Positions 9,721 through 31,121 of a DNA stretch of 64,000 nt are shown here, piece by piece (positions within the stretch are counted from its first letter, which is position 1; every line of letters begins with the position of its first letter). A model generated the notes under the pieces. That model ran no database searches and was not told the DNA's origin. It saw only the letters and a program-made list of their open reading frames with translations. The stretch comes from Lepidodermella squamata (taxonomy: Eukaryota; Animalia; Gastrotricha), in the NCBI GenBank assembly GCA_047495785.1, contig JBLDXI010000040.1:62001-126000 (forward strand), read 5' to 3'. The position numbers were made by a program, and so were the translations under genes.

Positions 9721-10744
9721 ATATCGCATCAAAGTTTTCCCTACTTTAATGGCGTGAGATTTCTGCGTTCATTTTCCATTTCTTACGCTCATTCATTCAT
9801 GATTCATGCGATGAAAGCAAAAACACGCGACCTCGCAAACGGGCAATAAAAATCAAACAAACGACAACAGCGTCGTCTATTAAGGCGGAATTTTTTACTA
9901 AATTCCTCTTTTGTTGCACGTTAACTCAGCATTGAAGATAATGGCCGACTGCATGTGATTGGCAATCTGTTCATCGTTTTCCCACTTGAAAGTTCCCGCT
10001 TCCCGCTCAATGCTTATCACCTACAGCTTCAGCGTCATCGTTCAAATTCTTATGGAATGTTATTTCGGGAATTTTTTAAACATTTTTATTTACGATTATT
10101 TTCACGTATTTTTCTTAATTTTAATCTCTGCGACAAATTCATCCGATAGCTTTTCGCGATCCTATTCGAATTGAATTATACCTTGAATCCAGATAAATCT
10201 CGATTTCTCGTAAATTTCAAGAAATTTCCCAATCGGCGCTTCCGACTTCCGATTTTCCGCCGAAAATAAAGAAAGCAAAATTTGGAGAGTTTTGAACGAA
10301 AAGGAAGACCATTTTTCCGCTCTTTTCTTTTTCGACCTGAATTTCGACCTTGCATCCAGAAGGAACTGCCGTGTTCATTTTTGCCTCTGCTTTATTTTGC
10401 ACCTTTGGAAATTTTTTAAACTGAAATCAAGCTTATTCCAGCGAATGAAGGCATGCTAGTCCTGATTTAAGGCGAGTTAGCTGTATTTTCGAAATTCATG
10501 GCTGAAAATTGCCGAGTGAACATCGCGTGATACTTTTATTGTTTATCGCCACACTCATTCACGAAAAAATGAGCACACACAAAATGGGGCACGCGATTTG
10601 AGAAGCAAGCAGACGATGACCTCGCACGCACTTGGAAAAGAAAAGCGACGCAATCATTATTTTTAAGGTGGCCTTTTTATTATTTTCTTGTTTTATTATT
10701 ATTATAGATTTGTGCATCAAAGCTGTCATTGCTGTTGTAATAAA

Positions 10745-11755
10745 ATGAAGTATCAATTGAACCTGATTTGTGCTGTGGCTCTGCTGATGATCGGAATTGG
10801 GTCAAATGCTGCTAAACCTGAACCCCAGCTCTACTACTTGGAGATGTCAATCCCGGCAATAAACGATGACCACTGCGCTGGCGATATCTCAAACCTGGTT
10901 ATTCACGCTTCGAAGGAATCGAATCTTTTCCCTGAAATTGCCAGCAAATTTTCAACGAATATTTCGATTTGTAAGGCAAATCTCGTGAGTGATGATGATG
11001 TGTTTTCTGGCTGGAATTTCCTGCAGTTGAACATGACGTGTTATTCACTCGAGCCGTCTTGCCCCAATTTTCCGAGGTTCGAACCGTCGAATTTATCGCT
11101 GAATTCGACGTGTCAATATGGCCGGAATTCGACGATGGATCTTTGCAGCGATAAGGAGGCGGCAAAGCCGGCTCAATTCAAGCTGTCTCTCGTCGCCGGG
11201 CATGACCAGGCCCATTCGAATCACGGCCAGCAATCGATTGTAAATTGCCGAGGCAGCGTGGCTGTGCTGAATGGTGGCATCGACAAAGCTCAGGCCCAGG
11301 GATGGGATAACGGCCACTATGAAATTCAAAAGAAATACGAAGACAAGGCAAAAGATCTAACATTGGAATATCAGGCTGCAGTTATTCGAAGCCACGAATC
11401 ATTTCAGCGAATTACGAAGATTCGTAAGTAATTTATAGGCTATCCCTGTTTTTTTTCCGGAATCAAGCTAATTAATTACTTGAAAGCCCGAATTGCAGAA
11501 GAAAATGACGACTGGAAAATTTTTCAATTTTTTTTTATTGCGTTGTAAAGCAATTGTGATTTTTTTGTGATTTTTGTTAAAATTCCAATACAAATTTGAG
11601 GTCTGCTGAAAATTGTATTTTCTTTATATTTTTGCTTTTTAGTCTGGAGCATTTTGGTTATACTTTTGATTGTTTGGGGCATCTATTATTGCCTGAAAAA
11701 AAGTCACGAATCGAAGAAAAAGCAGCGCCAAAACACTGCTAACAGCGCGGCCTGA
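10745..11755 (+). CDS. Orphan type-I membrane protein A1 (263 aa)
   Basis: Exons 10745-11423 and 11643-11755 (phase-1 intron, C|gtaagt...ttttag). Signal peptide MKYQLNLICAVALLMIGIGSNA, Cys-containing ectodomain, TM LWSILVILLIVWGIYYCL, basic tail. Paralogue A2 has the same structure. Confidence 0.85.
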
Positions 11756-11969
11756 AGACGATTCGCTCGAATTCTACCAACAAACAAGTATAATTATAGA
11801 ATTTGCACATTTTCCCCCAAGATTTAAGGGGGATTTATTGCCGATGATGAGCTGAAAGATGAAATAATGATTGTATGTGATTGATTTTAAAGTCAGGTTG
11901 ATGATGAGAAATATTATTTTTCTGCTTTCAAGATTAATCCAATTTTTTAGAAATTTTATTCGTTTAAAA

Positions 11970-13695
11970 ATGATGATTTTATGTCTTGTCGCGATATTGC
12001 TATCTCTGCCGATTCTCGTTTTCTCGAAACACGAATTGGCCATGTTTTTCCGAGCTACAATTGCGAAAATCGACGATGAATGTACGGCGAATTTGAAGAC
12101 GATGCACATTTTTGCGAGCACGAACGCTGCTAGCCGGCAATATTTCGATGGAAAGCGCGAAAAATCGGCGGTTGTTTTGCCAATTTTCCCACGATATTTG
12201 GCGGAAATTGATGAAAATGGCAACGAATTTATCGAATTTTTCCCGCGATTCAATTTGACCTGTTTTCTTGGCTCGTGCCCAAATAATCTCACTTTTTCAT
12301 CGAATTCGAGCCAGTTTCGTAAATTGCCGGGTAGATTTCCGCGGAAAATGATGAAGCTTTATTACGTTGATCAAACTGGAGATCGGCCTTTTTTCGATTT
12401 CTACCTGCTGGATAATAACGAAAATTTGGGCGATTTATTTCCGAAAATCGGAGATGAACTTTTCGAGTGTTTTGGCGAGGTGATTTACGAAGCTTCATTG
12501 GGTCGAGTGAAGCGATCTCAGGTTCGGCGATTGTCGAGAGGCAGGGCCCATTCGAATCCGATCAATAATCAGCGAATAATAGCCCCATCTTCGAGCAATT
12601 CGAATAGCACGTCAGAAGGCTTGGATAAATCCGGTATTTTTAAGTATTTTAATTCAATGGTTTAGATTTTCCTCGAAGACCCCGATAAAAGAGCGAATTT
12701 CGATTTCGGATTGCAATTTATATAAATTCGATGTAAAAATATTTGGCATATAGCTTAGGCCGGCGCAGTCATGGCCTTTGATTTCATGGCCCAGCACTTC
12801 TATGACTAAATTTAGGGCTGCAAACTTTAATCCTAAATTTAAGCTATAAATTCCATCTTGATAATATTCGATTTCGATAATAATTTACGGGTCCCCTACA
12901 AAGTAGGGAAAATTTAGTAACAGGCTTCAAAGCAAAAGCTTCAAAGCACCATGACCTCAAAGCAAAATTAAAAAATGGCTTCAAAGTAAAATAATAGTAT
13001 TAATTCCAATACATGGTGATCATTGCTTAATACTTTATTTTACTTTTTTTATGGGAGTGCTTTGAAGCCATTTGGTCTGAAGTTTGCACCATTTGTTGCT
13101 CTCTGCTTTATTTGAAGCCTGCTACTCTGTGGGGGACCCTAATTTACCCAATAGCCCTGATAATTTTCGTGTTTTAATTTCCATGCGGTATCCTTGGGCT
13201 GGTTTTAGCAAATTATCTGAATTTGGTATTCGAAATTTTGGTATCGGAAAAATGTCCCATAAATTCAGATATTTTTTAGGAAATTAAACTGAGTTTTGAA
13301 ATTATGCGCAATTCCATCTTTTTTCTTTATCCAAAAAAATAAAAACATTACCTGAGAAATAAACCCCGATGGTAATTTTTGGTACTATTTTACCTGGCAG
13401 GAACAAATTTTTTCGGATTTCTTTAATCCCATTAACAAGTTGATTATACTTGATGGCATTTTTTTAGATTTTTCTAGCCATGCGACTTCCCTTTCATTTT
13501 TGAGTTTCTGATCCCTTTTTCCTTTGTTTGTGTTACTGTGTCAAAGGTGAAATTAATTGCATTTTTTGTGTTTCAGTGGTCAATTTTTACTTGTGGGTCG
13601 CCTTGGCTGCCGGCATTGGTCTCGTTATATGCGGAGCTCCTTTTATGTGGTGTAGCTGCCTTTGCTGCCCCGAATTAACTCTGAGATCCCACTGA
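11970..13695 (+). CDS. Orphan type-I membrane protein B1 (260 aa) with furin-like RVKR site
   Basis: Exons 11970-12633 and 13577-13695 (phase-1 intron). Signal peptide MMILCLVAILLSLPILVFS, RVKR at 12504-12515, Ser-rich stalk, TM plus Cys cluster FYLWVALAAGIGLVICGAPFMWCSCLCCP. AATAAA at 13791. Confidence 0.82.
12889..13139. mobile_element. MITE with GGG...CCC termini and 8-bp TSD (Merlin/MULE-like)
   Basis: TIR GGGTCCCCYACARAGTAG. TSD TAATTTAC at 12881-12888 and 13140-13147. A single TAATTTAC marks the empty site in the B2 intron (18965-18972). Confidence 0.9.
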
Positions 13696-15594
13696 AACGA
13701 ACATGATGCTCACCTCGACAAATAACTGCGAACTTGTTAGCTGTTTAAAATTGATCTATCTTATAGTCTATGAAATTCGATTTGAACAAAAATAAAGTTG
13801 AAATTCGGATTATCTGGCTTTGCATGTAAAGCTTGAAACAAGGTTAACGGTTGGTGAAAGTTTTTTGGTGTTATCAATAATGAAGCAATCCAGCGAGCCT
13901 CTGTTTGACAATCGAGAGTGTGAATTTATAAAAAAAGCACCGGATAGCAAGAAGTCTGACTTCGCCATTTTTCACTATTGCTTTCAACTACTGCTTGATG
14001 GGTAACATTTCGGGATGAAGTTGAACCGATGAGTTAACAATTAGAATAGCGATAATGGCGAAAAATTGCATGCGTTCCACTAAATTCATTTATTAGTTCG
14101 AAATTGCAAAATAAATCGAATTTTATTCAATTTTTCAAACAAAAATTGGTCATGGTTCTAATTATTACTGAGTTCGAGGTTGCAGGAATCGATTTGTCGA
14201 CGCAGGAAAAATTGAAATTTCAGGCATCAGTAGTCGAATTTTCAGATATTATGAAAACAATTGACAATTTCAAACTTGGAAATGAGTTGAATATTTTCTC
14301 ACCGTTGATCGAAATTTCAGCCCCGCGTAAATTTTGCTAGATAGATTTATTAGCCGAAATCGGCGCCTCAAATTTTGCATATTATCTGAAAATTTTAAAT
14401 TAACAATAATTATTTTTTTATTTTTTGAAAATTCGAAATTTGGCAAATAATCTGAAAATAATGTGTATGTTTCGTATCCAGTGCCAGTTATAATTTCACG
14501 CTAAATTAACAGAAATTTCGAATAAAACAATCTCAAGCAGGGATCGAAAGGTTTGCTAATTACCGAATGTCGAAAATCGTACAGGATCGTATAGGAATTT
14601 TCGAGGTTTCGTCGCGATTAAATTTCCACCGGCTTTAATCGCCTAGCTAATCGACGTCCGATGGAGAACGTGATGGCTGCTTCCGTTGGGGATCAGTCAG
14701 CCTTGCGGGTAACTAACAATTTAGAGAGGTAGCAATTAATTAAGGTGGATTAAGACCTCATTATTAAATACAAGCAAAAAGTAGGACATGACCTGGAACT
14801 GCCTTGAGGAATTCGAAGTTGAGTGATTTCAGAAATTATTTCTGGCTGACGTGTATTTATTAAATAATAATCTATTAGTAAGAGCTATAGAACTAGAAAT
14901 TAATCAATAAATAAAAATTAAATACAGACTTAAATGCCTTTAACCCTAATAATAGATGAAGTTTCAAGTCAGTACCTTCCCGACCGAAATTTCACGAAAT
15001 AAAAGCTACGAGAAACGGTTTCAGTATTGAAGATTTCGAATTTAAAAGCCCTGTTCGTCGAAATAATCAAATCATAGACAACGCTGTAACAGATAGGACA
15101 CGAACGATCTTTCCATAGTGAATTTATTCGAGCTGTTATTGCAAAAAGGGCGGCACGCGACCACTTTTTATGCCACCTAACGCCCTATCCGCCCATTATA
15201 ATTTTAATTAATTTGAACAATTGAAAAAGCCGCAGGTACCTCTTTCGAAAATTTTGATTTTCTGCTCATAAATACTAGAAGCGGCCCTCTATCTAATGAT
15301 ACCAGGCACACCTAGTGTTCCCCTATGGATAATTTTCTAAAATTCGCCAAAAAGCTATATTTGTTGTTTTTGGGCAAAATTGCCATTCTTCTGCCACGGT
15401 TGGCTCTTTCGGAAAAATTTTGAAAATTTTGAAAAAATGAGTGTATCCATATTGAGAATTTTCTCTATCCGACGATATAAAATTTGTAGGGTAAATAATA
15501 TATTTTGATTGTTTGATTATTTTCGGTCTTGCTACATGGACTTTGACTTCTCTTAAAGCGTTGCTTGATTTAGAGAAATTCTTGAAAACAATAA

Positions 15595-16056
15595 CGAAGT
15601 GCACTTTCATACATATTTATGTATGACAAAATTAACTTTCATACATATTTTTTTTCATAAAATCATGTTTTCCAGCCAAACTGTGACTAGGAATTGGTAC
15701 TAGGGGTTAGGGTTAGGTGCCAGGGTTCGGGTTAGGGTTAGGGTTAGGTTTAGGGTTCGGTTAGGGTTCAGGATTAAGGTTAGGGTTAGGAAATTTCGAG
15801 TTTCGGGTTTCTTCGAAGCTCGATTTTTGGGCCCTTGCGCTTCCCCAATAACCATTTCCATGCGGAAAAAATTGACTACGCTTTCGGAACCCCGTTTTTC
15901 TTTGTCATAAACCGAAAACTAGTCATCTGGCATTTCCCTAATGATTTCAGCTTGAATTTAATGAAAAAAAATATGTATGAAAGTTAATTTTGTCATACAT
16001 AAATATGTATGAAAGTTGAAAATTTCATACATATTTATGTATGAAAGTTGGCACCC
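15595..16056. mobile_element. MITE carrying an interstitial (TTAGGG)n-like tract
   Basis: Inverted arms ctttcatacatatttatgtatgacaaaattaactttcatacata at ~15605-15660 and ~15960-16015. 9-bp direct repeat AAACAATAA at 15586-15594 and 16057-16065. Degenerate TTAGGG array at ~15700-15790. Confidence 0.8.
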
Positions 16057-16079
16057 AAACAATAATTTGTGTGGCCCAA

Positions 16080-16180
16080 AAAAATCGAAAAATCAAAATC
16101 AAAATCAAAAATCAAAAATCATAAAATCAAAATCAAAATCGAATCTCAACGATGATGGTAGATCTTTATTCGCACATGCC
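16080..16180 (-). repeat. (TCAAAA)n microsatellite, possibly the 3' tail of a non-LTR retroelement
   Basis: About 9 imperfect TCAAAA(A) units. On the minus strand an AATAAA precedes the (TTTTGA)n tail. Confidence 0.5.
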
Positions 16181-16797
16181 GATATTTCTCGGTCTACTTA
16201 TTTACGACCGGGTAGCCATAACCCAGATAATTTCAGCCTCTAGTTGAATCCTATTTTCCTATTCTTCCTATTTTTCGGTAACAAAAAGATGAAATAATCT
16301 GGGTTCAGGTTCGTCACGAGAAAATATTGAGCAACGTAAACGAATAATTTTCAAATTTGAAAACCACGAATTACGAAGAAACTGCCGTGGTTATTTTTCC
16401 AACCCGCACTTTATATCTCATCTCATAGAATTCGTCAAGCTACGAAAAATTCTCCCGCGATTGAAAGCATGCAAATCTCTTGATCGCCCAATCGCTGATT
16501 TATGGCGAGTTATCTGAATTTTCAAAATTCATGGCTTAATGAAATTACCGAGCTCGAATATGTAGCAAGAGCGTCGTCTGCGATTCTTTCATTGTTTATT
16601 GCCACGCTCATTCACGAAATAATCACACACACACACAATGGGGCACGCGACGCGAGAAGCAAAAGCAGACGATGACCTCGTTCGCACTCAGAAAAGAAAA
16701 GCGGCGCAATCATTATTTTTAAGGTGGCATTTTTATTACTTTCTCGTTTTATTATTATAGATTTTTGCATCAAAGCTGTAATTGCTGTTGTAATAAA

Positions 16798-17872
16798 ATG
16801 AAGTATCAATTGAACCTGATTTCTGCCGTGGCTCTGCTGATGATCGGAATTGGGTCAAATGCTGCTAAAACTGAACCCCAGCTCTACTACTTTGATTTGT
16901 CAATCCCAGCAATCGACGATGACCACTGCGCTGGCGATATCTCAAACCTGGTTATTCACGCTTCGAAGGAATCGAATCTTTTCCCTGAAATTGCCAGCAA
17001 ATTTTCAACGAATATTTCGATTTGTAAGGCAAATCTCGTGAGTGATGATGATGACTTTTCTGGCTGGAATATCCCGCAGCTGATGAATATGACGTGTTAT
17101 TCACTCGAGCCGTCTTGCCCCGATTTTCCGAGGTTCGAACCGTCAAATTTATCGCTGAATTCGACGTGTCAATATGGCCGGAATTCGACGATGGATCTTT
17201 GCAGCGATAAGGAGGCGACCCCAGCTCGATTCAAGCTGTCTCTCGTCGATGGGGATGAGCAGCAGCCCGGCTTGAATCACGGCCAATCGATTGTGAAATG
17301 CCGAGGCAGCGTGGCTGTGCAGAAGGGTGGCATCGACAAAGCTCAGCCTCAGCGATGGGATTCGCTGGGATGGGATTACAAACAACAAAAAGCTCAAGAT
17401 GAATTAACATATTATTTACAAGAACAAGATCGAAAGCGGAAGGAACACGAAAAACAGTTAAAAGATGCCGAACAGCGATTTCAGGCTGAACGCGCGCGAA
17501 TCCTGGAATCGAGAAAGCCATTGTGGGGTGAGTAATTTTTAACGTTCACGGCTATCTTTGAAACGCGAGCAATCGATTCTAATTCTTGATAAATTTCGAA
17601 ATCCCGAACCTCAATACAATTGGAAAATCGACAGGATTTATTACTTTTTTACGCACACATGAACGATAACCGAAAAATTATGGATTTTTTTTTAATTTTG
17701 GGCGAAATTCCAATCTGAATAATCTGAAATCATTGCTTAATTTTCTTTTTTTTCAGCCATGCTCATCATTTTGGGTTCAACCATTATTGGCTATTCAATC
17801 TATTATTGCTGCAAAAAATGTCACGAATCGGAAAGAGAGCAACGCCAAAATGCTGCTAACAGCGCGGCCTGA
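16798..17872 (+). CDS. Orphan type-I membrane protein A2 (281 aa)
   Basis: Exons 16798-17527 and 17757-17872 (G|gtgagt...tttcag). N-domain is near-identical to A1, followed by a longer charged helical stalk and TM LWAMLIILGSTIIGYSIYYCC. Confidence 0.85.
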
Positions 17873-18088
17873 AGAAGATTCGTTCGAAATCTACTAACAA
17901 AAAGTCTAATTCTAGAATTTCCTCGGTTTTCCCCAAGTTTTAAGGGGGATTTATTGCAGATGATGAGCTGAAAGCTGAAATAATGATTGTATTTAATTAT
18001 TTTTGAAGTCAGGTTGATGATGAGAAATATTATTTTTCTGCTTTTACCAAGATTATTCCAATTTTTTAGACATTTTATTTGTTTAAAA

Positions 18089-19226
18089 ATGATGATTTTA
18101 TGTCTTGTCGCGATTTTGCTATCTCTGCCGATTCTCGTTTTCTCGAAACACGAATTGGCCATGTTTTTCCGAGCTACAATCGCGAAAATCGACGATGAAT
18201 GTACAGCGAATTTGAAGTCGATGCAAATTTTTGCGAGCACGAACGCCGCTAGCCGGCAATATTTCGATAAAAAGCGCGAAAAATCGGCGGTGGTTCTGAC
18301 GATTTTCCCACGATATTTGGCGGAAATTGATGAAAATGGCAACGAATTTATCGAATTTTTCCCGCGATTCAATTTAACCTGTATTCTTGGCTCGTGCCCA
18401 AATAATCTCACCTATTCAATTAATTCGAGCCAGTTTCTTGAATTCCCTGGTAGATTTCCGCGGACAATGATGAAGCTTTATTACGTTGATCAAACTGGAG
18501 ATCGGCCTTTTTTCGATTTCTACCTGTTGGAGAATAACGAAAATTTGGGCGATTATTTTTCGAAATTCGGCGATGAATCTTTCGAGTGTTTTGGCGAGGT
18601 GATTTACGAGGCTTCATTGGGTCGAGTGAAGCGATCTCAGGTTCGGCGATTGTCGAGGGGTAGGGCCCATTCGAATCCGATCAATAATCAGCGAATAATA
18701 ACCCCATCTTCGAGCAATTCGAACAGCACGTCTTCGATTGACGGCTCTGATAAATCAGGTATTTAAGTTGTTTAATTCGAAATTGTTTAGATTTCTAGTC
18801 GAAGAAATCAACATCTGAGCGAATTTCGATTTTAGATTGAAATTTATATAATTTAACGATAAAACTTTAACCGCGCATCCTTGCCATATGAAAAGGCTGT
18901 AGTTCGCAAACCTAAATTCTGAATTTTAACTCAATTTCCTTTCGATATTGTTCGATTTTGATAATAATTTACCCAATAGCCCTGACAATTTTAATTTTTT
19001 AAATTTTGCGTGAATTCATTTGGTTTTTTTTAAAAAAAATATATCCTGATTTTATCTTCAAAATTGTGATAACGGAAAAATCAGTAATTTGTAAAATCGA
19101 TACCTGAAATCGATTATCTCAATTAGATTATCCTTGGCTGCCTGCATTGGTCTCGTTATATGCGGAGTTCCTGTAATGTATTGTAGCTGCCTTTGCTGCC
19201 CCGAGTCAATCCTGCCAGTCCACTGA
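18089..19226 (+). CDS. Orphan protein B2; exon 1 intact, TM exon lacks an in-frame acceptor
   Basis: Exon 1 at 18089-18758. B1-homologous TM codons remain at 19131-19226, but the nearby AGs (19084, 19126) give a stop or a shifted frame. The unspliced frame stops at 18766. Confidence 0.65.
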
Positions 19227-19700
19227 AACGAACATGATGAATCCCCTTGAATGCAGGCCACCTCGAGAAATGACTGAGAACTTGTTAGCTGTTTAAAATT
19301 GATCTATCCTATAGCCTATGAAATTCGATTTGAATAAAAGTAAGGGTGAAATATTGTTTATTATTTGGCTTTGCAGATAAAGCTTAACGCAAGGGCGGTT
19401 AAGGTGTTATCAATACTTCGGAGATCTAACGAGCCGCTGTTTAAATTGCTGCTCTTATCTTTCTCAGCTATAGTATTAACGATGAGGTAAGAAGTTCATT
19501 CATGAACCGCTATGAAGGTATTTTGAATTTCAACAAAATTCACAAACCGAAAAAGCTGAAATCACAGATGAGAGCAGCTATTGCAGAAATAAGAAGATAT
19601 TATAATTAATTCAATCTACGCGAGATAAGAAATTTTTCTAGGCTTAGCATGCAGTTGAGCTCGAAAGCTTTCGTATTCATTGCCTGAACCAAGTTTACAA

Positions 19701-22700
19701 TCAGGCCAGCGTGTGCAACACAATCAACGAAGCTCCGCTGTAGTTGCTCGCCGTTGAAAAGCCATTTATCCCATAGGAATCACTGATAAAACAGTAAAAG
19801 GTCAAGATACAATTTTAAGATTCTAGCTAAAAAAGCTCACGGTGTCATGCAAGTGAAACACGCCAAGCCAGTGAGCGTGTTGTTTGTCATCCAGGAACCT
19901 CCGCCGAACGTCGCCGAGTTGGCCGGCCGGTCCTGGGCTAAGAAAGGCAGTTCGAGAGCCAAGGCCCCACTTGTCATTCCACTTGGCGCGTAAGTTGACT
20001 GCGACTGAAAAAGCAATGATAGGTTTTTATGTTTCCTTTCTTTTAAAACTGAGAGCTAACATTCGATGTAGATGCACAAGCAATTCTATAGCTATTGATT
20101 TCGTTGTCGATATAGCAATCCTTGAAAACCAAGCCACCCATTCTACCGGCTGATGTTTCCATTTGCATGATAATGGTCCAAGTTGCTGTCATATGAAAAG
20201 CTGAATTTGCATCAAGATGAAACTCAGGTCCACTTACACGGGATTTTAACCAAAGCTAGACCGTCGTCGTAAGTTTTAGCCGGAGTAGCAGAAACAGGCG
20301 TTCTGATTTGCCCATTGCCGGACCATCTGCGAGTTCCGTCAGACCAAGGTGGGTCATATCGTTCAATGACACGGCTGATGTACTCGTCGAAGTAGAATTT
20401 TCTAGACAAGTAGTAGTTGCAGCCACACGTGACCACGTAATCAGTCATCGCATCGTGACACAAGCATACGGATCGATTTTTTATGAATAGCTTGCGAAAA
20501 AATGTAGGTTTACCTATTGGTAAAGTTCGGCAATATATAATAAATTCTCACCTTGCCTTGTCTAGAAACAAAGCGAGAACACGCTGTATTGGTGGTTGGG
20601 TTCGAGACGACAAGGAATGACGTAGTGCTGTTGAGAGGTTCCACTTTCAAACAGTTTGTCTTGTCCGCTGAAGTTGCAATCAAATAGTTTGACATCAAGC
20701 GGTTGGCCCACTCCAAGCCGAGCCATTGCGTTGAGTTGGTTTTCGACCCGAATCCTGGAGCAAGATTGCGGCAATTCTATAGCCATTTTAGGATCAAATT
20801 GATCTTACCCCATTTATAGTCTTGGTACATCATTTTCCAGTAATTCCAGTCGACTAACGCTATTTTAAATGACTTTCATGTTATTTCGACTTATTCTCAA
20901 ACTACTCAAGACTTACCGGTTCGGCGATGAAATACCATTACCACTGATCAAAATTCGTTATAAATTATAATGAATCATCAACAGGAAAAATTACTTTCCG
21001 TAGGCTTAAGTGGACCACCAATGCAAGTCGCGTTGCAAACGCTGTTAGGCAGATAGATACAATCAGCTTCGAACGATTTATCGCCAATGTCAGCTTGAAA
21101 TCGATATCTGCCGGGGCCCAAGCCGAGCCGTGTCACCAGCGTGCAATCTATTGAAGAAATTGACTTGTTGACAGTCGTCTACAACCTAACAGATTTTACC
21201 AGTGTAAGTGTTGGCCCTGCAAATCGGAGTCTCATCTGCCTCCTGCGAGTGAAATATCGAAGTAAGACTATGCAACGCCATCGCATGAAAGACCTTACCA
21301 AGTGGTAGTAAAACCAGCCTAGAGCAGCCTCGAGACCCTCCCACAGCTCGTTCGTGTGCCCGGTGTTCAGCCAGCACGTTGCATTCGACGGATTATATGA
21401 GGCGGAGCGGCATCGATAACCGCCACTTCTGTAGCACGTATCCAAGCATGTCCTCAAGTCAATGCCGATGATTTCTTGATAAGTGTCTGCTTTGATCAAC
21501 CGAAAGCCCTTCCCGCAATTCCCAGGTAAATAAAACTGAGGGCGAGCTATGATGAAAGAAATTTGCGTGTTGAAAAGACATTTTCGTAGGCAAAATACTC
21601 TTCTCGCTGCAGTCATCTCCAGTTAGTCCTTTGGGACACTTGCAAATGCCAGGCCCTATGCTTGTCCCTCCATTTTTGCATGGGAAAATTTCTAAAAACT
21701 CGAAAAGTCGAGGATCCAAAAATACTTAGTTACCACTCACTTTTAGAACAATCAACGCCCATCCAGCCTTGTTTGCAGTAGCACTGATTGGGCCCACCAT
21801 TCTGTCCGGGAGCACAGTGGCCGCGGATGCAAGTAACAGGACATATCATGAGCGAATAAACTCGCAGGTCTATGACATCGACGTGGTTGCCACAAGCATA
21901 CACGCCGACGTAGGCAGACTCCCCAGAAATCGGGAAGGTGTTACCCGGAATAGCTGAGTGTGTCGAAACACAACTAGTCGTCGTGCATTGGTCGACCTGA
22001 AACAAAATATAAGGTTGTATGGGCGAGGGGATCCTGCTATCACCAACCCAGAATTGGCCGTTGCGCACGACCATGCCGACGTGGTAACGTGTGTTGACTC
22101 TCGTAACTGTCGTGTAGTAATTCGTTTTCTTCATTGTAAATGCGGATATTAGCCCAGTAGTGCCATCGAACCCAAATTCGGTTATAACACCCCGTAACTT
22201 GCTGGGGTCGACGTTGTTGCCTGAGCACAACAAATGGCTGTAAACTGTATGAAGCTATTATGCTTGTTCAACACACCCCCTCCAGATGGACTTGGAATCA
22301 GTGCATTTTCGTTGGCAACATATACACCCGTGAAGGAATAGTTGGCGCCTTCGTGTGAATAAATCGTTGCGTTGATGCTGAAGTCTGTCAGCGTGAATGG
22401 TACCTTCCCGAGCATGTAGCCATTATTGTGAGGGCCTTGGCCGAAAGTCAACCTCACAGCTTTGTTAGGCTGTAAAACAGGCCCGGGTGCTGTCGCAGAA
22501 TAACGGTACTTCCAGAGGCTGTAGTTTGCATTGTTCGGATAGGACCATTGCTCAATGTAGTTGTCAGGATCCGTTAGAGGTGTGCTGATATCTGAACGTT
22601 ATAACGATTACCCACTATACTATATGTTTTAGCTTTTTCTGAGAACTTCGCAGAAATTATTCTCAGATTCGGAAAGCATACAAAATTTCCACAAGACTTG

Positions 22701-30050: not shown

Positions 30051-31121
30051 ATGCCGCGAGCGTACAAAAAGACATCAAATATTGACAGGGAAAGGTTGGT
30101 AGCTGCCATCGAAAATGGCGAAGATTTTCATGCGGCTGCAAAGGTCCTCGGAATTTCAAGCAGAACCATGTATAATATCATCAACACATATCGCACCGAT
30201 GCTCGCATTGAAGCTGAGCATCGAGGAGTTGCTCCCCGCCGTTGGGAAGGTCAGTTTACTGATCATTTAGTTGGGGCTATCGAAGAAAACTCCCAGCTGA
30301 CGTTGGAAGGATCTCAGGATGAGACTGTTGCAAAATTGTAATGCAGAATTTTCGATCACGACGATCCGCACAGAAAATTGGATGGCGCCCTAATTACGAT
30401 GAAACGTCTTCACCCGTATCCCGCTACTCGCAACCGGGCTGATGTTATTTTGGAACGAGCCGCATATGCGCTCTGGTTCTCTGATATCCGCAATCGCCAA
30501 ATTCACTACTACCAAGACGAATTCGGCGTTTCGCTCTGGACTCGTCGCGGCCGTGGCAGAGCGCCGAAGAGACAGCGAGCCTATGTTTTACTGCCGACAG
30601 CTTCTCCCGGCAACAATATGTCTGTGGCGGTGGTAGTTTCACCTGTTAGAGGGCTGGTCTACTACTACTACGAAATTTCTGTAACGGGCATGACTGCTGA
30701 ACGATTCGCAACGTTTACCACGCAAACTAGCGAGCGAATTGGCCATCAAAACGAAGCTGTTATTATTCTGGACAATTTGAGAAGCCATTATCCTGACGCC
30801 GATTTTCCGCTGTGGGAGCTGCATCAGTTCAAATTTCTCCCACCTTATTCGCCGTTTTTGAACCCTATCGAAAACGTTTTTTCAGCTGTGAAAGCTGCGG
30901 TAAAAAACGAACCAGCTATGCGTAGGCTGGAATACTACCAGCTTATCGAGGCTGCGCGTGTTGTTGGCGCTGTTCTAGAAAATACCCGTCGTGAATTTTT
31001 GAGTGAAATCATTGAAAGGCATCTTCGTGCAGTTATTACACCTGAACTTGTGGCTAATTGCGATCGCCATGTGCTAAACCATCTACCAGCCTGCATCGCG
31101 AGCGAACCAATAATGGGTTAA
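30051..31121 (+). mobile_element. IS630/Tc1-type DDE transposase, frameshifted near 30310-30380
   Basis: N-terminal HTH (AAAKVLGISSRTMYNII), YYQDEFG, IILDNLRSH, LPPYSPFLNPIENVF. D-to-E spacing counts as 32. TIRs not found. Confidence 0.9.

Follow-up and report, generated by a model that had tools for sequence, protein, structure and literature searches.

What are two neighbouring genes that resemble no known protein family, are hard to align with each other, and have been copied together as a pair? The question is raised by a stretch of 64,000 nucleotides (nt) from the gastrotrich Lepidodermella squamata (GenBank assembly GCA_047495785.1, contig JBLDXI010000040.1, here C40, positions 62001-126000), which we call the window and whose numbering is used for all coordinates unless a contig or locus is named. 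The window contains two duplicated gene pairs, A1-B1 and A2-B2. In the reading we favour, which we consider probable, A and B are old, diverged paralogues that together with two further genes, X and Y, make up a tiny family of fast-evolving type I surface glycoproteins that cross the membrane once and have so far been found in this genome only. Below we describe the genes, the link between them, and the alternatives against which this reading was weighed.

Gene structure and predicted proteins

A and B are two-exon genes in which an ectodomain exon is followed by a phase-1 intron and a transmembrane exon, a layout described in the initial annotation of the window and recovered in our gene models of A1, B1 and A2. 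Exon 1 of A1 (10745..11423, + strand, as for all four genes of the window) encodes a signal peptide, a domain of ~160 amino acids with seven cysteines and five N-glycosylation sequons (four in A3, a copy described below), and a charged stalk. The phase-1 donor, C/GTAAGT after 11423, is followed by exon 2 (11643..11755, stop codon 11753-11755), which encodes a transmembrane helix, the sequence YYCL and a basic tail. Exon 1 of B1 (11970..12633) encodes a signal peptide, a ~160-amino-acid domain with four cysteines, the tetrapeptide RVKR (12504-12515) and a Ser/Asn-rich linker; its phase-1 donor is G/GTATTT after 12633, and exon 2 (13577..13695, stop codon 13693-13695) encodes a transmembrane helix and the cysteine cluster CSCLCCPE. 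In the second pair, A2 comprises exon 1 (16798..17527, phase-1 donor G/GTGAGT) and exon 2 (17757..17872, stop codon 17870-17872; transmembrane helix and YYCCKKC tail), and exon 1 of B2 (18089..18758) is intact and 91% identical to that of B1, with RVKR at 18623-18634. By hydropathy, a signal-like hydrophobic segment opens every exon 1 and no further hydrophobic stretch follows there, while each exon 2 has a single transmembrane segment with cysteines after it. A and B are accordingly modelled as type I membrane glycoproteins.

The two features that the initial annotation had singled out in B, a furin-type RVKR after the domain and a cysteine-rich tail, were both found: all three B copies (B1, B2 and B3) carry RVKR, which immediately follows the last strand predicted for the domain, and the tail reads CSCLCC. 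The tetrapeptide fits the convertase-substrate motif R-X-[K/R]-R and is a candidate cleavage site as a motif. Its cleavage is plausible because the genome has at least eight genes with a proprotein-convertase P domain. The stalk attributed to A is present as a charged segment of 40-60 amino acids; that it is helical, as had also been claimed, is suggested by its composition.

The few amino-acid differences between copies and haplotypes are concentrated in two loops that A and B have in common, one before the N-x-T-C strand and one before the last C-x-G strand (alignment columns 60-78 and 165-190; A1 ~10995-11050 and ~11190-11250; B1 ~12210-12260 and ~12410-12470). X varies mainly in the first loop, where X2 has a seven-residue deletion. 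The two variable loops may be tolerant surfaces or binding surfaces.

A family of ten genes in five ordered pairs

Profile searches of the 121.2-Mb, 151-contig genome assembly identified exactly 10 family members at five loci, all in same-strand ordered pairs. A1-B1 and A2-B2 lie in the window, on the + strand of C40, and A3-B3 lies on the - strand of contig C29 (3111670-3113568). The two remaining loci hold a second kind of pair, X1-Y1 on contig C46 (17318-19489) and X2-Y2 on C29 (3219460-3221599). The earlier expectation that A and B always occur as ordered pairs thus held genome-wide, with 5/5 loci paired and no member unlinked. The gap from stop codon to ATG is 214 nt in A1-B1, 216 nt in A2-B2 and 155 nt in X1-Y1. 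Common to A, B, X and Y are a signal peptide, a ~160-amino-acid β-rich domain with up to six conserved cysteines, a phase-1 intron, and a transmembrane exon with membrane-adjacent cysteines.

Probable homology of A and B through Y

The initial annotation had aligned A with B at three short motifs. All three alignments were reproduced exactly by MAFFT and hhalign, but the direct similarity between the two proteins is not significant (BLASTP E 2.3; hhalign E 0.079); phmmer gave 6.4 bits for A against B, compared with at most 4.2 bits in 300 shuffles. A search of the genome with B gave a weak match on C46, which is the X-Y pair, and it is this second pair that connects the first. X and Y are likewise two-exon genes, in which the transmembrane exon is preceded by a phase-1 intron (of 52 nt and 115 nt, respectively). 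Y matches B with an hhalign probability of 93.5% (E 3.5e-8; phmmer 21.3 bits) and A with an hhalign E of 5e-4 (phmmer 18.7 bits), the corresponding phmmer control reaching at most 11.4 bits in 300 shuffles. X matches Y with an hhalign probability of 63.5%, and when a profile of A and Y was compared with a profile of B and X, hhalign returned 93%.

In the family alignment, columns C18, I27, A29, S30, C73, C80, C142 and G144 are invariant in 10/10 sequences. There are six aligned cysteine columns, of which B lacks exactly columns 2 and 5, and A adds a seventh cysteine. Because B lacks both cysteines together, columns 2 and 5 are suggested to pair in one disulfide. AlphaFold2 models of A1 (predicted local distance difference test, pLDDT, 63; predicted template modelling score, pTM, 0.66) and B1 (pLDDT 72; pTM 0.68) are β-rich and have the same strand order, with 40/44 strand residues of A1 aligning with strand residues of B1; the different predicted folds that the initial annotation had named as a refutation did not appear in these models, which share one alignment. 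Profile similarity on the one hand and the framework of intron and cysteines on the other both point to a shared domain in A, B, X and Y, and the proposal of a single unrecognised domain underlying both A and B is upheld by the cysteine columns, the gene structure, the predicted strand order and the link via Y. We regard the homology of A and B as very likely, a judgement that rests on the bridge through Y, since it is this intermediate and not the direct A-B score that links them.

The order of events within the family is less clear from the tree. In the maximum-likelihood tree the branches are very long (~2 substitutions per site to A and to B, 3.6 to X) and Y lies near the centre; A groups with B and X with Y (support 74/88), and alternative topologies are not rejected (approximately unbiased test, AU, p 0.31). 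Ancient copying of a whole pair, which would unite A with X and B with Y, is not told apart by the tree from tandem duplications within each pair, which would unite A with B and X with Y. Some tail motifs point to a kinship of B with Y (CCP[EQ]) and of A with X ([YF][YF]CCK[KE]), but are too short to count. X and Y also carry long cytoplasmic tails, which A and B lack. In the tail encoded by exon 2 of Y (positions 2414-2995 of locus L007), an acidic Ser/Asp cluster precedes a Pro/Tyr-rich end, and the tail encoded by exon 2 of X (L007 788-1339) contains a CCYFFCC cluster; these clusters may be sorting or signalling motifs.

Duplication of the A-B unit and loss of an exon end in B2

Copying of the A-B pair as a unit, as inferred earlier, is a recent event and was borne out by blastn, which aligned a segment containing A1-B1 (10462..13906, + strand) with one containing A2-B2 (16495..19442, + strand). 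Their identity is 72-90% over the individual blastn segments and reaches 96% locally. At the protein level, A1 and A2 are 76% identical and B1 and B2 are 91% identical. The domain of A2 is 85% identical to that of A1, and its stalk is longer and strongly diverged, with insertions of 15 nt and 42 nt relative to A1.

The shared structure of ectodomain exon, intron and transmembrane exon holds for B2 in its intact exon 1 and fails in its second exon. Compared with B1 and B3, what remains of the latter (19132..19226, + strand) is missing the acceptor and 27 nt at its start. The transmembrane reading frame is open from 19095 only, the phase-1 donor gives no in-frame access to it, and the sole AG in reach (19125-19126) joins out of frame with that donor. 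With neither an acceptor nor an in-frame AG, B2 may be a truncated, probably secreted variant, may use a non-consensus upstream donor, or may be starting to decay.

Identity between the units is uneven. The stretch comprising the A stalk, intron and transmembrane exon (11310-11700 versus 17360-17820) is only 52-73% identical, unlike the exon 1 flank, the A-B spacer and B, which are 86-98% identical. Such a low-identity stretch amid conserved flanks suggests either gene conversion of the ectodomain parts or fast change of the stalk. Import of the diverged stalk and transmembrane segment of A2 from another gene was considered and rejected, as the segment matches nothing else in the genome. Part of the 2.6-kb spacer that separates the units is filled by a 450-520-bp repeat, present in two neighbouring copies (15073-15594 and 15603-16056). 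The repeat has inverted ends of ~60-90 nt, resembles a miniature inverted-repeat transposable element or a foldback element, and gave over 150 genomic matches, spread over many contigs, with identities of 86-96%.

Probable haplotypes and copy number

The window aligns collinearly with C29:3.08-3.13 Mb, which runs in the opposite orientation, and the identity, counting non-coding DNA, is 92-95%; the first 30 kb of C46 (1-30 kb) are collinear with C29:3.20-3.22 Mb at 93-95%. Because these collinear copies are so similar, C40 and C46 are probably an uncollapsed second haplotype of C29, the other candidate being a very recent large duplication. If they are a second haplotype, the haploid set would consist of one X-Y pair and, ~107 kb away, one or two A-B pairs. 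Since the region is probably present twice in this way, from the single animal sequenced, gene-family copy numbers counted on this assembly may be inflated here.

Between the two collinear copies of the region, the number of A-B pairs is 2 versus 1. In the 3' half of A and in the A-B spacer, the single unit on C29 is 97-100% identical to unit 1, and from the B intron onward it is 95-98% identical to unit 2. With a unit-1-like 5' end and a unit-2-like 3' end, it is a chimera of the two units, as unequal crossing-over between them would produce, and copy number thus changes by this route.

Pairing and co-transcription

The initial annotation proposed a paired system, for example a heterodimer or a shed ligand (B) with its receptor (A). 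Extended to X and Y, this would make the two members of each pair obligate partners, forming a paralogous heteromer or acting as shed ligand and anchored receptor, kept adjacent for co-expression and serving cell-cell or gamete recognition. Several observations fit this. Every family member sits in an ordered pair, and the gap within pairs is ~0.2 kb, compared with 3.1 kb from B1 to A2. The A-B intergenic stretch is 86-96% identical between units, that is, as conserved as the exons. B has RVKR where A has a stalk and an odd number of cysteines, and the differences between copies fall in the same two loops of A and B and the first loop of X. Adjacent paralogues that form heterodimers are also known, CD8A and CD8B being an example. 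Against partnership, the best tree is the one that independent tandem duplications would give, although its alternatives are not rejected; B2 has lost the acceptor of its transmembrane exon while A2 is intact, from which it follows that the pair is not strictly co-maintained; and RVKR is not conserved in Y. Plain tandem duplication accounts for the pairing no less well, and we consider obligate partnership unlikely.

Co-transcription of the paired genes is a separate matter, and is suggested by the gaps of 155-216 nt together with an acceptor-like site before each ATG. A polypyrimidine-AG site of this kind lies 2-37 nt upstream of every ATG of A, B, X and Y (stretches at window positions 10707-10744 and 11940-11969, and at L007 45-66 and 1465-1497). 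In the 214-nt stretch between A1 and B1 (11756..11969, + strand) it ends at 11950, 19 nt before the ATG of B1. An AATAAA hexamer lies ~95 nt downstream of the B1 stop codon.

Searches for relatives in sequence and structure databases

Each exon was searched separately. For the exon 1 products of A1, B1, A2, B2, X1 and Y1, Pfam returned no family at E up to 1, in agreement with the initial annotation, which recognised no family for the domain; the transmembrane and tail exons gave only weak, composition-driven matches, and no Pfam-A hidden Markov model, those of Zona_pellucida, Shisa, Ig and PA included, came near its gathering score. A profile search of PDB sequences gave a single chance match at E 0.73. 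No relative was found by a word-indexed search of 5.8 billion protein clusters with A1 exon 1 and with an eight-sequence alignment (E up to 10), by a full HMMER profile search of 1.84 billion representative proteins, by metagenome scans with Y1 and with B1, or by a genome-contig scan with Y1. The ESM Atlas yielded only noise below 0.9 for Y1 and B1. When the models were submitted to Foldseek, the best matches had E values of 0.1-0.15, template modelling scores (TM-scores) of ~0.2 and a root-mean-square deviation (rmsd) of 17 Å, and thus gave no fold match. Rfam found nothing in the whole window, and a scan for bacterial promoters and terminators, whose models do not apply to an animal, stayed at or below shuffle expectation. 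The family appears to be an orphan as far as the databases reach, and these hold almost no gastrotrich data.

The domain could instead be a very diverged version of a known extracellular fold, such as an Ig-like or ZP-N sandwich or a PA-like domain, with the family as a fast-evolving branch of it. A furin site ahead of a transmembrane segment recalls the precursors of zona pellucida (ZP) module proteins, the models of A1 and B1 are β-rich, and the top Foldseek matches for A, though weak (E 0.15-0.6), are all ZNRF3/RNF43 ectodomains. Gastrotrichs, moreover, are a long-branched lineage (PMC11660948). The absence of any Pfam match at E up to 1 and of a PDB sequence match, as well as the low TM-scores and large rmsd of the Foldseek superpositions, speak against a known fold, and we find this explanation rather improbable. 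A further reading, in which A-B and X-Y form a co-transcribed heteromeric or ligand-receptor system with a new fold, hypervariable loops and copy differences between haplotypes, serving gastrotrich-specific recognition of self, mate or environment, strikes us as quite a long shot.

Selection on the coding sequences

The ratio of nonsynonymous to synonymous differences (pN/pS) is 0.21 between B1 and B3 (p 2e-6), 0.36 between B1 and B2, 0.37 between A1 and A3 (p 0.009) and 0.44 between X1 and X2 (p 0.01). The coding sequences of A, B and X are under purifying selection, and the genes are therefore real. That the open reading frames (ORFs) are chance ORFs, decaying pseudogenes or an assembly artefact might be entertained, as no family protein occurs in any database searched, B2 is damaged, and the assembly was made from multiple-displacement-amplified DNA (PMC11660948); we judge it extremely improbable, given that ten exon 1 ORFs are open over 215-266 codons and that splice sites, signal peptides, transmembrane exons and cysteine columns are conserved, that pN/pS is significantly below 1 in A, B and X, and that the units differ by 6-14% within a region present in two diverged collinear copies, which makes an amplification chimera unlikely. 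A viral envelope origin of B, considered for its furin site and cysteine-rich tail, was rejected, there being no hydrophobic fusion peptide after RVKR, no viral or long-terminal-repeat neighbours, and two collinear host copies of the locus.

A working model and the points against it

In the reading we favour, that of a small family of diverged surface-protein paralogues, the pairs would have arisen by local tandem duplication, and the paired genes are probably transcribed together. A furin-type convertase would cut B at RVKR and free its domain, and A would stay anchored on a helical stalk with its seventh cysteine unpaired. At the cell surface or outside the cell, the proteins would bind or recognise a partner.

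A number of points weigh against this reading or parts of it. The gene models of A and B were read from genomic sequence alone, and RVKR cleavage, palmitoylation, the helical stalk and co-transcription are predictions made from the same source. The direct similarity of A to B is insignificant, as given above, and the AlphaFold2 models of A1 and B1 have only moderate scores; their agreement is not independent evidence, because both were built from the same alignment. A, B, X and Y are all absent from a collection of 15 billion proteins. As for the message ends of A and X, no canonical AATAAA follows their stop codons. Selection, finally, is uneven: A2 is relaxed, with pN/pS of 0.7-0.85 and the changes mostly in the stalk, and the ratio of 1.36 between Y1 and Y2 comes from only 17 differences and is not significant.

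Genomic surroundings

The neighbours of the array in the window are intron-poor Cys-loop channel genes, kinase-ankyrin arrays and, between Cys-loop channel genes at 30378-31121, a Tc1/mariner-type DDE_3 transposase ORF (PF13358, E 3e-19). Just downstream of the array, on the minus strand at 21179-22457, lie ORFs that show, by eye, a PAN/apple-like cysteine pattern and match EGF weakly (PF23301, E 1.4e-4); they probably belong to another gene for a secreted or surface protein.

Comparison with known systems and significance

Among known systems, the lineage-restricted tandem families of surface glycoproteins in invertebrates offer a parallel in their small type I proteins without outside homologues, their fast evolution, and their local tandem copies whose number changes by unequal crossing-over. 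The present family differs in being tiny, with four types, and in its strict two-gene pairs 155-216 nt apart, one of whose members carries a convertase site. CD8A and CD8B are adjacent paralogues that form heterodimers, and they resemble A and B as same-strand neighbours with an ectodomain, a stalk, a transmembrane segment and a short tail with a membrane-proximal cysteine; unlike them, A and B lack an Ig domain or any detectable homology to them, and B seems to be shed, not anchored.

ZP-module proteins such as uromodulin are furin-processed type I precursors, and B shares with them an R-X-K-R between the ectodomain and a C-terminal transmembrane anchor, an arrangement that predicts release of the ectodomain. 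B differs in having no Zona_pellucida match in Pfam, no hydrophobic patch after RVKR, and ~160 amino acids with four cysteines, compared with ~260 amino acids and 8-10 cysteines in the ZP module. Shisa-like/STMC6 adaptors likewise combine a cysteine-containing ectodomain with one transmembrane segment, and Y is closest to them in its long Pro/Tyr-rich cytoplasmic tail, but the family has no Pfam match, another cysteine spacing, and an ectodomain two to three times larger. In their arrangement, finally, the pairs recall the spliced-leader operons of nematodes, tunicates and flatworms, with same-strand genes 155-216 nt apart and an acceptor-like site 2-37 nt before each ATG, a likeness read here from the genes alone; they depart from those operons in lacking a canonical poly(A) signal after the upstream gene and in consisting of paralogues, whereas classic operons usually join unrelated genes.

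On present evidence, A, B, X and Y make up an ordinary orphan family. If expressed, they would provide an extracellular domain without sequence or fold relatives in a phylum with almost no molecular biology. They also present a compact case of the birth of surface genes, in which tandem duplication, extreme divergence between paralogues of ~2-3.6 substitutions per site, unequal crossing-over between haplotypes and the loss of the anchor in one copy can be seen side by side. In addition, their strict pairing with gaps of ~200 nt may make them useful for testing whether gastrotrichs co-express paralogues in an operon-like way.

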